From positions 21,707 to 85,706 of the forward strand of contig ADNK01001857.1 of assembly GCA_000320545.1 (NCBI GenBank): 64,000 nucleotides of DNA, read 5' to 3'. Position numbers and translations under genes: made by a program. This document shows positions 42,167 to 64,000 of this stretch, one piece after another. The notes under the pieces are model-generated. The model was not told where the DNA came from. It saw only the letters and a program-made list of their open reading frames with translations, and searched no databases. Origin of the DNA: Bigelowiella natans CCMP2755 (Eukaryota > Protista > Cercozoa). How positions within the stretch are numbered: the first letter of the stretch is position 1; each line of letters starts with the position of its first letter.

Positions 42167-42595
42167 CGTCGTTGGTCAGGACACGTAACTGCTCGTGGTT
42201 GCAGCCATTCGAAAGCAACCACGAACTGATGGTTTATTTAGATATTATTTTATACTATAAATATCTAAATATTCTACATTCCTTTTTCACCGTTAATTAG
42301 ATGTTGTCTATGTTGTTTGTGAGGTTGGCATCGTTTGTGTTTTATTATGGAAGAATGTCCGACGACGTCGCCGCCACACAAAAGGACGACAAGGGAGATA
42401 CATACCCCGAGATACCCTACTGCTGCAATCTATCCCTCTCCCCCCTCTGCGAGGAGAAGACTTGCCGACCGAAATTGGGGACTGAACGCATCGATGGTGT
42501 GGTGAAAAGTAGAAACCTACTTTCACTCTAGATCTCCTTGTAACCCTTCTTGTTTAAGATATTCTTACACCTGGAGTGTGGGTCGGTCATCATCA
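42167..42595. promoter_or_regulatory. Putative bidirectional promoter (nucleotide-sugar transporter / CYP)
   Basis: Divergent start codons 430 bp apart; AT-rich core at about 42230-42300. Confidence 0.55.
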
Positions 42596-44674
42596 ATGAG
42601 AACTACCTTCCCTCTGGCTGCTGCCTTTACCGCTGCCGCTTTCGGGTTGAGTCTTCTCTTGCTAGGAGAACCAAAGCCTGCTACTCTAGGGCAGAGGCTC
42701 TCCCTAGCCCTCTTCTCAGCACAAGCGACGACAAATCCCGTCAAAGCAGTTACTACTACTACTACTACTACTGCTGCTGCTGCCACTCTCCACATCGAAG
42801 CTGCCCGCTTACGACGGGGAAGTGGGAAAATTAGATGGGGCAGGAGATGTATGACAGGGAGAGCTTCCAGCCTAGAGAAAAAGGATGAAGAGGCAAACTC
42901 GGAGACTGGGCGACGACAACAACAACAACAACCAAGGCGAAATAAAATCGATGGGTTCGTAAGCAATAGTAGAATTAGGGGCAGCAATGGCAGGGTTGGC
43001 AGCAATGGAGGTGACGGCGACATGACATTGTCACAACTGCCTCAGATACTCAACGATCTTACGTCCACAATGTCGTCGATTATAGAGACCTCGAACAAGA
43101 TGTTGAAGGAAAAGCCTGAATGGCTACCGCCTGGTCCTGATGCTGACATATCGGTCGGGATGGTTTCAAATCCCGTTGCAACTGTCGCGGAGCTCTCCAG
43201 AGAGTATGGGAAAATTGTAGGGGCACGTATGGCAGGCGAGAACATCGTCCTTGTCGCCGATTCCGACGTTGCGGCATTCATCCTATCAACACGCGCGGCG
43301 AAGAATTTGACCAAAGAGGGCACAGCATTCTTTCCAACGAGTGAGCTGACAGGGAATGGGCTATTAGTATCTGATGGAGATGTTTGGAAGCGACAACGCC
43401 GTTTGGCTAACCCTGCATTTCGCACAGCATCGGTTAATAGGTATAAGGAGGTCATGCTGGATGAGGCTGCAAGTCTGTTTTCAGCTTGGTCATCAGGGAA
43501 AAAAGACGTATACAGAGAATATAATGATTTGACCCTCAGGATAGCTTCCCGAACTCTATTTGGAGCGTCTGTTACGGGCACAGAGGCTGGTGAAATCAAT
43601 GACGCGATAAAGACTGCTTTTACCTTCTTCTCAAAGAGGGCTGCAAACCCCCTTTTGCAAGCTTTGCCATCGTGGGTACCAATACAAGAGAATCTCGAAT
43701 TTGCAGACTCAGTTAGACGACTCGACGCTGCGGTTTTCAAAATAATTCAGGAGAGGAGGAATATGCTACTACTTGACGCGGATAGCGACTGTTCTAATAA
43801 CATATCAAGGAGCGGTAGTAGCAGCAGTAGCAACAGCAGCAGCCGCAGCATCACCAGAGAAGATGCAGGTCCACTGCGACGACGAGAATCTGTAGAGGGC
43901 GGTCTCTTAGACACCCTTCTCCTTGAGAAGGATGAAGAAGGAAAAGGCATGACTGATGAAAGCTTACGGGATGAGCTGAATACCCTTATAATAGCCGGAC
44001 AAGAGACTAGTGCAATTTTACTTGCCTGGACGACTGCTCTTTTAGCATTTAATCCTGCCAGTATCATCAAAGTACAGCGAGAGATCGATGACTTTTTTAA
44101 CAAGAAGAAAAATGAGTTTTCTGATACTGCTATTGATCCTATCGGGGAAGATTATCTTTCTGCCTTGCCTTTTCTCCAAGCTTGCATATTAGAATCTATG
44201 CGTCTCTATCCTCCAGCATTCCTAATGGGGAGGAATGTCAATTCTACGGAGGGTCAACAAATAGGCGATTTCAGCATTCCAAAAGACACCACAGTTCTCT
44301 TAGCACCCTACGTGATCCACAGAGACCCTGCCATCTATCATTCCCCAAACCGTTTTCTCCCTGAGCGGTGGCTGGAAAGCGAGAAGGGTGATAATAATAA
44401 TAATAATAATAATAATAATAGCAGTAGAAGCTGGGTAGAGATCTTGAAAGATGGAGCTCAGAGTGGGCAATACCTCCCCTTTGGTGCAGGTCCAAGAGTT
44501 TGTATTGGAACAGGCTTTGCGATGTTAGAGGCCAGCATTGTGTTAGTCGAGTTGTTAAGACGATTTTCGTTACGACCGACGGGTAAACTCCCAGAGCCAA
44601 ATGCCCTCATAACACTTCGTCCATCTATGTTTGAAGTTGAACTCAGAGCTCGTATGCATTATACTTCTAGATAA
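42596..44674 (+). CDS. Cytochrome P450 (CYP746-like), intronless, with signal- and transit-peptide-like presequence
   Basis: Single ORF, first ATG at 42596. WKRQRR, I-helix AGQETS, ExxR (ESMR), PERW and heme motif PFGAGPRVCIG. The segment KEGTAFFP..LTGNGLLVSDG recalls green-lineage CYP746 (from memory). Confidence 0.93.
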   Translation: MRTTFPLAAAFTAAAFGLSLLLLGEPKPATLGQRLSLALFSAQATTNPVKAVTTTTTTTAAAATLHIEAARLRRGSGKIRWGRRCMTGRASSLEKKDEEANSETGRRQQQQQPRRNKIDGFVSNSRIRGSNGRVGSNGGDGDMTLSQLPQILNDLTSTMSSIIETSNKMLKEKPEWLPPGPDADISVGMVSNPVATVAELSREYGKIVGARMAGENIVLVADSDVAAFILSTRAAKNLTKEGTAFFPTSELTGNGLLVSDGDVWKRQRRLANPAFRTASVNRYKEVMLDEAASLFSAWSSGKKDVYREYNDLTLRIASRTLFGASVTGTEAGEINDAIKTAFTFFSKRAANPLLQALPSWVPIQENLEFADSVRRLDAAVFKIIQERRNMLLLDADSDCSNNISRSGSSSSSNSSSRSITREDAGPLRRRESVEGGLLDTLLLEKDEEGKGMTDESLRDELNTLIIAGQETSAILLAWTTALLAFNPASIIKVQREIDDFFNKKKNEFSDTAIDPIGEDYLSALPFLQACILESMRLYPPAFLMGRNVNSTEGQQIGDFSIPKDTTVLLAPYVIHRDPAIYHSPNRFLPERWLESEKGDNNNNNNNNNSSRSWVEILKDGAQSGQYLPFGAGPRVCIGTGFAMLEASIVLVELLRRFSLRPTGKLPEPNALITLRPSMFEVELRARMHYTSR

Positions 44675-58659: not shown

Positions 58660-61020
58660 ATGTCACGGCATCGCGGTATGAAAGCGATGCTGGACGACTA
58701 CGAGGACGACAGATACAGGGACGATGAAGGTTCATACATCTCCACCTTTCATACCATACTCCTCTGCCATGCATGGAAACCATACTCGGTGAGCTATGGC
58801 GGAAGGTGTCGTGCTAAATTTTATTAAATTTTTAGATGACTATTGGGAGGAGGAGGATCAAGCCAACGATACAGAGTACCTCTATGAGCGCCCTCCGTCA
58901 GGTGCTTGTTGGACATTCACGAGATGAGACTGCGAGGCATGCACAGACCGCCTTCCGGAAATGATTTTCTTAACATCTGTTTGTTAGGCCAATATGATTT
59001 ACCGCCTGCAAAAGGGATCACGAATTCCAAATCTGTAGCGGCAGGGCTCGATGGTCTAAAGCGCCTCTCTCTGCAGCCTAAGCTTAACGACGAAGTCATT
59101 GCACAATTCACCGTCGATGGCCAGGTATCTTAACAACAACTTTCCTTGAATGGAATTTTCAATAACTGAGCTCACAGGCAACATTTGAGGAAGGTTTCAT
59201 GTGTGGGGTTTCCTTCTTCTTCTATCTTTCTTTTGCTGTTATTCGGTTAGTGGTATCCAGCAACAGTCACAGCAGTGACACCTCTCGGAGACGGGCACTC
59301 ACTTTTCCGAGTGATGTATACCGGGTTAGTTTTCTCGATTCTAAGGAAATTTCTATGCTTATGAAGATGTAAGAGAAGGCATCACAGCGGGAGAACTCTC
59401 CTCCTGATGCTTCTTCTTGATGGCATTACTTCTTGACACATGTTCTAAATTATAAAGCTATGGAAATGAGGAAGAGTTGACCTTGGACCAATTGAGGCTA
59501 CCAAAGGCAAAGCAAGAAGGTAATTCTATAATTATTATTATTATTATAATATTATTATTGCATTGTGGATAATGACCTCTCAGCTAATCTTCACTGAATT
59601 CCACGCACGCAATCTTTATTTACCAGTTTCTGCTATGAATATACCTTGATCATCATCATTTATACGGCGACTAATTCTTCGCACTACTCTTTATTTCACC
59701 ATCATCAACTTTTGATGATATTCCAAAAACAACTGAAGATGAATTAAAGACGCTAGATCTCTCCAAAGGTAGTACAGAAGAAGTGCAGAGGGAATTGGAC
59801 AAAACAGATCTAATACACAAGGGAGGGTATGAGAGGCTTCTACAACAAGCACAGTATTTACTACGTATATATCAAGAAGCTGCTTATATATTATTAGTTT
59901 TATGAAATTTGGTTCTTTTGCTTGCCTTGTTTCTCCTCCTCCTTTTCTCCTCCTCCTCCTCTTCTCTTCTTCCACTGCTCTCAGGAATTCGCCGGACATC
60001 ACAAGTAAGGCTCAAGCTGAAAGTTCCAGTAAGTATTAATAAGTTGAAAACTAGATGATTAGCAACGATAGATAATACCAAAATGGTAAACCAGCGAGAT
60101 ATCCAGGAAAGAAGGATACATATACAATATATTCATAAATAGCAATACTACCAGTAGTGGTATTAGTACTGGTGGTCATCAATTTAATATATGCTGCTAT
60201 TGACTACAACACATTTAGCAAAGTAATTTCTCCAAATCTCGATCATTCCCGAAGAACCTCGGTGTCAGCAGCAGCAGCAGCAAGCAAACAAAAAATATGG
60301 GCAGTGGTAAGAAGAATGTCAGTAACAAGATTTCAGACTTCAAATCCAGGGTAAAACCTTCCTTCTCCTCCTCCTCCTCCTCCTCCTTATCCAACACATA
60401 AGCCAAAACTGGCAATAAATTGCAACAACCAGTACTTGCTTCTCGTTCGGAGTGGCAATGTATTTTGATGATCATCATCATCACATCATCATCATCACAT
60501 CATCATCATCATCATCATCATCATAAGCAGTAACTCGTATCGTCATGATGATTCTATTGTTGAGAGACCAGGTGGTACCGGTACTACGTCTTTTCAGTTT
60601 GAACATGAATCATTATGAACTATCATGCAGTACGTATTCTCACCTGTTTGCTTACATTTTTGAAATGATACAGCAGCGCAGGGATAATGGAGATTGTAAG
60701 AGCGCACAGCAACCACCTAAATTGAAGAAGAATTATTCAAATTCCAAAGCAAATTCGTACATCCCAAGGTCTCTAATGAACCATTTCTCTTCCTCCTCTT
60801 CATCCTAACCCATCACTTTGTTATCTGCCGTTTGGTGCAAGGCTTGGCCTCTTCCTTCTTCTTCTTCTTTGTCTTTTTTTTTCTTCCCTTCATCATTCTC
60901 ACATTAGTAATGATGATTCACATTTCTTCTTCGATGACCTGTTGTGATGATCATCATATCTATATAGTAAGAAGCATGAAGCAGAAAGGGCTAGACTCCT
61001 CAGCGAGAGGTAGTAGTAGC

Positions 61021-61055
<35 letters not shown>

Positions 61056-61654
61056 AGCCCTTTGATAGATACTACTATCAACCACCCCATCCCATCATCA
61101 ATATCCATCAAAATCTGCATTATTAAATACGTAGGCTTCTTCCGTATTGTTATAGAAGTGCAATCGAGATAGATATTCAAATATTGCTTTCTGACCCCCC
61201 CCCCCCCCTTATACGTTATACACAGGTGTGGTGGATCCGAGCCAGCTGCATCTTCTTCCTCGTCATCATCCTCATCCTCGTCGTCCTCGTCTCCACATAA
61301 GATGAATTTAGTAGTGATTGGGCATGTAGATGCTGGTAAATCTACGCTCATGGGACACCTACTTGTGAAGCTTGGAAGAGTAATACTAATAGTATAATAC
61401 ACATTGAGAAAAAGTGCATTCACAGTAGCAGCCCGAATATCGGTCAACGACAAGTATTATATTCGTCGCAAACGCCCATATTATATATTATATATACACA
61501 TATTACATTTGTAATGTGACATTATAAGGAAACAAACTTATGGATATTTTCCATCATGACGACGATGGTGATGATGATGATGACCTCTTGAACGTTTCGC
61601 TTGAAAGCACTTGTTTCTCATCTCCTGACCGAGCACTTTGCTACTACTACTAAT

Positions 61655-61691
<37 letters not shown>

Positions 61692-62238
61692 ATGGTACTT
61701 AATTAGGTTGATCAACGTACCATGCGTAAGTACAAGAAGGAGTCTGCTCAGATGGGAAAAGGGTCATTTTCCTTTGCTTGGGTACTTGATGGTCATCAGG
61801 AGGAGAGGGAACGAGGCATCACGGTAATAAAAAACCATTATCATCATCATCAACAACAACAACAGCATCATCATCATCATCACCATCATCGTCGCCTCGA
61901 TAGACCATATATTCTTATTCTTCTTCTTCTCCCTCCCTTCTTCCACCTTATAATCTCATGATGGTAGGTGGATGTAGCGACAACTCATTTCAGCACCAAG
62001 AATCGTGAAGTCACCCTTTTGGACGCTCCAGGCCATCGGTAATATATGTCTTAATAATAATAATAATATTAGTAATAATAATAATAAATATCAGTATTCT
62101 TTCGTGATGATGACGATGGTGGTGGTGGTGATGATGATGATGATGATGTATTTAGTTTGATTTTCTGGTGCTGATTCCTCATCCATTATGATCCTTGGTA
62201 ACCTTGTTTTTTATTCTCTCCTTGTGGTCATTACCATA

Positions 62239-62273
<35 letters not shown>

Positions 62274-63428
62274 TCATCATCATCTAGGGACTTCATCCCG
62301 AATATGATATCTGGTGCGGCGCAAGCTGATGCTGCTATATTAGTGGTAATATTAATAATCTTCTTCTCCTTCTGCAGCAACATTACCGGCGGTATTTACG
62401 ATGATGCATTAAGGTTGAATTATATTGTCAATCACACATAATCAGGTTCCTGCAAAAATTGGAGAGTTTGAGACCTCATTTGCCAAAGGTATTAGTATTA
62501 TTCAGTCGTAGTAAATCAATCCAGATTTAGGCCATCAATGACGACAGTCTGCTCAGAACAACAACTACCTTCACTGTATTCGTCATGTTTTGGAATTAGT
62601 TTGATGATGATGTGTGTATACTGCATTATTGACTGATTGACAAATGAATGAATGCATAAATGGATATAGGGGGGCAGACCAAGGAGCATGCAACCCTTAT
62701 CCGCAGCTTCGGTGTCAAGCAGATTGTTGTCGCGGTTAGTAATATAACCACAATGAATAATAATGATAATAATAAAAATACACAATACTTAATAAACACT
62801 TGCACATCATGATCATTGTGATGATCATCCTCATCCTCCTCCTCCTCCTCCTCATCATCATCATCATCATTCTTGTTGATTTCTACAGATTAACAAAATG
62901 GATCTGGTCGGTTGGTCTAAGGCGAGATATGATGAGGTGCAATAATATCCACATATGATCACGATGTACGTACCTACTACCTCATTGCCGTCATTATCGT
63001 CATCATCGTCATCATCGTCATCATCATCATCATGATCATCATCATCACACAACCATCATCAGGTATCGAAGACCGTAGTAGGTTTCTTGCGATCATTGGG
63101 ATATAAATCAAAGCAGATTACTCTCGTTCCTGTTAGGTAATACAGAAGATAGATAGTAAAAAACAACAACAAGATGAACCAGAATAAGCAGCAGCAATCC
63201 TGCTCACTTAACGTGTCATGACCGGTAACGGTGATGAAGAAGATGATGATGATAATGATGATGATGATGATTTGTATTGTTATTTGTATTAGCGGTCTAT
63301 CGGGAGAGAACCTGACTGAGGCAAAGAGTGTAGATTTGACACATTGGTACAAAGGCAAGTCTCTTGCAGAAGCAATCGATAATGTAAGAAGAAGAACAAC
63401 AACAACAACAATAACCTAACACTTAAAA

Positions 63429-63680: not shown

Positions 63681-64000
63681 TCAGATTCCCGCACCTCTAC
63701 GCAACGGTGAAGGCGATTTGTGCATGGTTGTGAGCGACATTTACAAAGCTCAGACCTCCGGCGCCCTTATGGTAGTATTAGTAGCAGCAGCAGTAGTAGT
63801 AGTAGTAGTAGTAGTAGTGACAAAGTAAAGTGTGTTTTTTTTTGTTTCTATCGTTACAATGCCTCTTTTTCTATAGATTGCTGGCAAGCTTGAGCGTGGA
63901 TCCGTCATCCCAAAGGATAAGGTGAGAGACGATGATGATGATGATAGTCATGATGATTGCTTGTTTAAGAAGAACAAGTAGAATGGGGATAGATGGTCAT
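58660..64000 (+). CDS. HBS1: HBS1-like translational GTPase with an N-terminal Tudor domain; 3' end beyond window
   Basis: Start MSRHR plus acidic DDYEDD stretch typical of HBS1. G-domain exons [42 protein letters not shown]|[11 protein letters not shown]|[35 protein letters not shown]. Confidence 0.93.

Follow-up and report, generated by a model that had tools for sequence, protein, structure and literature searches.

A stretch of 64,000 nt from Bigelowiella natans (contig ADNK01001857.1, positions 21,707 to 85,706; assembly of 91.4 Mb), here called the window, was analyzed. On its plus strand, five exons between positions 58660 and 59519 encode an acidic N terminus followed by a Tudor domain that is spread over three exons, and eleven exons between positions 61226 and 63921 encode the G domain and the start of domain II of a GTPase of the eEF1A family. 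Together with exons on a second contig, they probably make up a single HBS1 gene, the product of which would consist of an acidic N terminus, an SMN-type Tudor domain, a basic low-complexity linker, and an eEF1A-like GTPase with domains II and III.

Acidic N terminus and Tudor exons

The borders of the five upstream exons are all GT-AG, and their phases are consistent. Exon 1 (58660-58729) starts at the first ATG of its frame with MSRHR and leaves in phase 1, and exon 2 (58836-58901), which begins with DYWEEEDQ, is in phase with exons 1 and 3. The N terminus encoded by these two exons contains 36% Asp and Glu and six aromatic residues, including Tyr and Trp. Exon 3 (58988-59124) encodes a linker of about 30 residues and then the first strand of the Tudor domain, exon 4 (59251-59324) encodes its core (WYPATV, followed further on by VMYTG), and exon 5 (59458-59519; phase 1 out) encodes its end. 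A preliminary description of this DNA had placed a Tudor domain on exons 3 to 5, behind an HBS1-type MSRHR start. Its exons proved correct to the base, with GT-AG borders, matching phases, and the peptide that it had given, and the start corresponds to exon 1, which is in phase with the Tudor exons by way of exon 2. The acidic N terminus lies 2.5 kb upstream of the GTPase, and the join between them is predicted only. Also on the plus strand, 14 kb upstream of the HBS1 gene, a 698-residue stop-free frame that begins with GTG (42578-44674) reads as a cytochrome P450, which is intronless, whereas the HBS1 gene is intron dense.

For the Tudor domain, we used a hidden Markov model (HMM) trained on seven other chlorarachniophyte Tudor domains and without the exons of the HBS1 locus. 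Five of the seven were from B. natans (those of two ABCF1-like paralogues, one represented by a transcript product with 100% identity to it, of locus L006, and of Tudor-SN, and the second Tudor of an SPF30-like protein), and the other two were from ABCF orthologues in other chlorarachniophyte transcriptomes. The model was scored against all 3,063 stop-free pieces in the six frames of the whole window. Rank 1 was taken by the piece at 59456-59569, which contains exon 5 (profile positions 41 to 53; 9.7 bits), and rank 2 by the piece at 59251-59361, which contains exon 4 (profile positions 19 to 40; 9.6 bits), while the tail of exon 3 aligned with profile positions 7 to 17. Coverage of the barrel by the consecutive exons 3, 4, and 5 is colinear, and since these pieces are adjacent, lie in order on one strand, and are contiguous on the profile, we do not attribute the match to chance. 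An HMM built from ABCF proteins alone was too narrow and did not detect the exons, which the broader HMM did.

In a Pfam scan in which each exon was scored separately, SMN_Tudor (PF06003) was the sole family match of exon 5 (59459-59518 alone; 12.1 bits, profile positions 41 to 56), with no match to this family reported for exons 3 and 4; with exon-by-exon scoring of this unspliced domain, no single exon attained the gathering score of 22.7 bits. Exons 4 and 5 can be aligned to the Pfam-verified ABCF Tudor. Searches of the PDB with exons 1, 4, and 5 singly gave no match, and a genome search with the profile PF00567 returned Tudor-SN only. The intron before exon 5 cuts a Gly codon, the one preceding a Tyr, after its second base. 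Another Tudor gene (L004; G000:C2616:8148-11273, plus strand, about 1429-1800) has an intron at the same position and in the same phase, which supports the exon 5 junction and points to a common origin. Judged by eye, the HBS1 Tudor has its nearest relative in the genome in an SPF30/SMNDC1-like gene (L003; G000:C1997:23299-26343, plus strand, about 1270-2099), namely the second Tudor (FYPATVETIT...), which stands immediately after the first.

An HBS1-like GTPase at the end of the contig

The first exon of the G domain (61226-61379) encodes a poly-Ser run and then the P-loop (GHVDAGKS, at about position 61320) and matches Pfam GTP_EFTU (1.1e-7). It is followed on the plus strand by G-domain exons 2 to 6 (61707-61823, 61968-62038, 62288-62345, 62446-62488, and 62670-62734), with the motifs DAPGH and GGQTKEH, and by exons 7 to 9 (62889-62936, with NKMD, 63063-63136, and 63293-63383, with WYKG); the nucleotide motifs are intact. 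Exons 10 and 11 (63685-63771 and 63877-63921) open domain II. The contig ends at window position 64000, and the gene picks up again at the beginning of contig C1879 (L026), where exons of domains II and III are found on the plus strand at 156-335, 1087-1143, and 1688-1780 and terminate with ALGRISIRR...ETV. The two contigs adjoin across an assembly gap.

The affiliation of the GTPase was assessed by PDB searches with individual exons. With exon 63293-63383, the only translational GTPases matched were HBS1L and Schizosaccharomyces pombe Hbs1, and with the C1879 exon HBS1L was the sole translational GTPase matched, although weakly (E values of 0.1 and 0.57). Exon 61226-61379 matched archaeal EF1A and HBS1L about equally well, ahead of eEF1A, yeast Hbs1, and eRF3. 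By PDB scores, the two most conserved exons (the first and second of the G domain) are at least as close to eEF1A as to HBS1, and eRF3 ranks below both. The genes for eRF3 (L012 and L019) and for EFL (L017, L018, and L016) occupy separate loci, and this, together with the HBS1 matches of exon 63293-63383 and of the C1879 exon, supports an HBS1-like GTPase, in line with the preliminary description, over eRF3 or EFL. One HBS1-like GTPase only was found in the B. natans genome, and a search for the pelota/eRF1 family gave one match there, on C3118 (38.6 bits, below the cut-off).

The two eRF3 genes are distinct from each other (L012, G000:C3314:80000-89999; L019, G000:C3109:1-3000): one has multiple exons and a PAM2-like motif, and the other, without introns across 517 residues, is nearest to red-algal and plant eRF3. 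L017 and L018 are two EFL genes, and L016 is EFL-like with a long N-terminal extension, which may be a targeting peptide.

From the Tudor domain to the GTPase

Between the Tudor and the GTPase exons lies a 1.7-kb region without homology (59519-61226). Two candidate linker exons in it, both predictions on the plus strand, were selected by hand as well as by a constrained chain search. The first (60674-60768) is basic and rich in Ser, Asn, and Lys, is entered in phase 0 and left in phase 2, and has a coding score of +9.7 bits; the second (60968-61009) is in phase 2 at both ends, as the first G-domain exon needs. The stretch before them (59520-60673) is ambiguous, offering alternative short linker exons that have no homology support and on which the two models disagree: 59739-59768, 59985-60004, and 60219-60350 were predicted by hand, and 59757-59826, 59898-60028, 60158-60222, and 60330-60350 by the chain search. 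The best predicted phase-consistent chain leading from exon 5 into the G domain scored 89.2 and exceeded all of 60 dinucleotide shuffles (54.8 ± 10.3; maximum, 78.3; z of about 3.3). The reverse complement had a chain score of 69.8. The first G-domain exon has a poor acceptor, at 1.9 bits. Nearly all introns between 59520 and 63900 contain tri- or dinucleotide microsatellites (CAT, CTC, GTA, CA, and TA); because some of these are stop free in several frames, ab initio exon calling is unreliable here.

Three kinds of search for a joined product gave no match. Exon 3 (45 residues) found none in the whole protein library, which includes the JGI and MMETSP proteins of B. natans. Among the JGI metagenome and transcriptome contigs, a collection that may omit the records of this genome, exact matching of 32-base patterns taken from exon 4 and G-domain exon 2 found none. 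In two profile searches, neither HBS1 nor a Tudor-bearing GTPase was among the 120 matches listed, which were dominated by eRF3; the exon translations of HBS1 had entered these profiles as separate rows on an eRF3 scaffold. The placement of numerous short exon rows by MAFFT was unreliable.

On balance, we consider it likely that the Tudor domain and the HBS1 GTPase belong to one gene, joined by the predicted chain. The argument is chiefly one of architecture: HBS1/SKI7 proteins of animals, fungi, and plants have a conserved negatively charged start and then one small domain (PMC6143672), and here a similarly acidic start (exons 1 and 2) and a Tudor domain immediately precede the sole HBS1-like GTPase detected and share its strand.

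The locus could instead hold two genes that arose by fission of an ancestral HBS1, the first encoding a protein of about 150 to 250 residues, with the acidic N terminus and the Tudor domain, that ends between 59.5 and 60.6 kb, and the second encoding an HBS1 with a short N terminus. Reading through the exon 5 donor leads to a stop after 17 codons, and in-frame ATGs occur just upstream of exon 60674-60768 and, at 61302, inside the first G-domain exon, so that a separate GTPase gene could start at either. Hbs1 N domains range from 27 to 367 residues in length (PMC2613156), which allows for a short one, and the failure to find a protein containing exon 3 in the library fits such a split as well. 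We nevertheless hold two genes to be unlikely: the upstream part has the acidic N terminus that is conserved in HBS1/SKI7 (PMC6143672), it is immediately followed, on its own strand, by the one HBS1-like GTPase that the genome was found to contain, and the phase-consistent chain that connects the two parts outscores every shuffle.

Quite unlikely, in our estimation, is that one locus yields two products, a long HBS1 and a short SKI7-like isoform with the acidic N terminus and the Tudor domain in common, in which case the Tudor would serve the exosome/SKI pathway no less than ribosome rescue. Alternative splicing of HBS1/SKI7 is widespread, the animal and plant loci normally giving short isoforms too, which end before the GTPase exons (PMC6143672; PMC5389692), and the 1.7-kb gap can hold an alternative terminal exon. 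Against this, a SKI7-like or Patch 4-like motif was not found in any frame between 59.5 and 61.3 kb, and the sole DDI-containing stretch there (at 59714) cannot be reached in frame from an AG acceptor.

The Tudor cage, its candidate ligands, and known systems

Alignment to the ABCF and other Tudor domains places the cage at a Phe in exon 3 (AQF), two Tyr residues in exon 4 (in WYPA and VMYTG), and a Tyr and an Asn in exon 5 (YGN). We take these five positions to correspond to W102, Y109, Y127, Y130, and N132 of SMN, the first being Phe instead of Trp. The SMN-type Tudor with an F/Y/Y/Y-plus-Asn cage that the preliminary description had reported is upheld by this comparison with Pfam-verified Tudors from B. 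natans itself. From its sequence, we infer that the Tudor of the HBS1 locus may bind methyl-arginine. We think it very unlikely that the domain serves simply as a barrel for protein interaction, with no reading of methyl-arginine, or that its exons are rarely included cassettes of little functional weight. In favor of these readings are the Phe at the first cage position, a loop between the second and third strands that is 2 to 3 residues longer than in the ABCF Tudor, and the very frequent alternative splicing of B. natans, but each of the five cage positions holds an aromatic residue or Asn, Phe is found in working Tudor cages, such as those of TDRD3 and SND1, and the Tudor exons keep the frame open with matching splice phases.

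On the 40S subunit, the N-terminal arm of Hbs1 is positioned close to where the mRNA enters. The B. natans proteins on this entry side include eS10 (L027; G000:C797), with a long C-terminal tail of GRG/RGG repeats, and uS5 (L028; G000:C2978), with a long N-terminal one. We regard these two tails as candidate methyl-arginine ligands. In other organisms, such tails belong to the classical substrates of PRMT5 and PRMT3, and given the GRG repeats and this substrate status, the Tudor could dock HBS1 on methylated 40S tails. In the mechanism that we propose, the HBS1 GTPase would bring Pelota to the stalled ribosome, as in other eukaryotes, with its N-terminal arm lying near the 40S mRNA entry site, where the cage of the Tudor (Phe, three Tyr, and Asn) would hold dimethyl-arginines in the GRG-repeat tails. 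In that case, the role of the Tudor would be to dock HBS1 on the 40S subunit and not to sense ubiquitin.

Tudor domains of the same kind occur in a second group of chlorarachniophyte proteins. Two intronless ABCF1-like paralogues (L001, G000:C777:68390-71521, minus strand; L002, G000:C1335:5865-8996, plus strand) have two Pfam ABC_tran domains and a C-terminal SMN_Tudor, and their best PDB match is human ABCF1. The ABCF1-Tudor protein is expressed, the intronless gene being 100% identical to MMETSP/JGI transcripts in a cluster that includes JGI model Bigna1/50642 (EukProt Bigelowiella_natans), and it is conserved in Bigelowiella longifila and Gymnochlora sp. CCMP2014. A homologue search with the ABCF Tudor region returned ABCF-Tudor proteins only. 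A broader, and rather doubtful, extension of the docking reading is that SMN-type Tudors are a general ribosome-docking handle in chlorarachniophytes, with the methylated GRG tails of 40S proteins, eS10 and uS5 among them, recruiting several ribosome-associated NTPases, for which HBS1 and the ABCF1-like ATPase are candidates. If it held, ribosomal arginine methylation would be a recruitment code for translation quality control, and in the case of HBS1 it would replace the ubiquitin mark that is read in animals.

A current view of the N-terminal arm of HBS1/SKI7 is that it directs the rescue machinery to particular ribosomes. A methyl-arginine-binding Tudor in HBS1, if confirmed, would suggest that this arm is a swappable reader slot and would link no-go and non-stop decay to ribosomal arginine methylation (on uS5, eS10, and uS3), a modification with a purpose that is still poorly understood. 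With HBS1 and the ABCF1-like ATPase, the same lineage offers two independent Tudor proteins for testing one hypothesis.

As to what is known of HBS1 N termini, the UBA-like three-helix domain of mouse HBS1L binds ubiquitin (Kd, about 50 µM; PMC13232801), and plant HBS1/SKI7 (Arabidopsis At5g10630) has a RanBP2-type zinc finger (PMC6143672). Both papers agree with the earlier remark that known HBS1 N termini carry one or the other of these domains and not a Tudor, and a full-text literature search for HBS1 with a Tudor domain gave no such fusion, as judged from titles and abstracts. On the contig, HBS1_N (PF08938) had no match, although a domain split by introns could evade such a search, and the VLG[DE] hallmark is absent from every coding frame between 58.6 and 61.3 kb.

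The gene from B. natans appears to carry a Tudor domain where HBS1 of animals has a ubiquitin-binding domain and that of plants a zinc finger. Like mammalian HBS1L and SKI7 (HBS1LV3), its proposed product would combine an acidic N terminus, a small reader-type domain, a disordered linker, and an eEF1A-like GTPase, and its WYKG exon and its domain II/III exon match HBS1L in the PDB; unlike HBS1L, it would have a beta-barrel Tudor in place of the ubiquitin-binding UBA-like domain. With plant HBS1/SKI7 it would share a negatively charged N terminus, one small domain, and a GTPase (PMC6143672), the small domain being a Tudor instead of a RanBP2-type zinc finger. Since the Tudor stands at the site of the mammalian UBA-like and the plant RanBP2 domains, the small reader module of the N-terminal arm would have been exchanged. 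The Tudor itself resembles those of SMN and SPF30 in its YPA and YTGYGN motifs, its four aromatic cage positions plus Asn, and its length of about 55 residues, but it differs in that the cage Trp is replaced by Phe and in that it probably belongs to the gene of a translational GTPase and not to a splicing or snRNP factor. The ABCF1-like Tudor ATPase (P0001-P0003) is likewise a ribosome-associated NTPase of this lineage that carries a Tudor of the kind seen here; its Tudor, however, is C-terminal, is encoded in an intronless gene, and is about 30% identical to that of HBS1.
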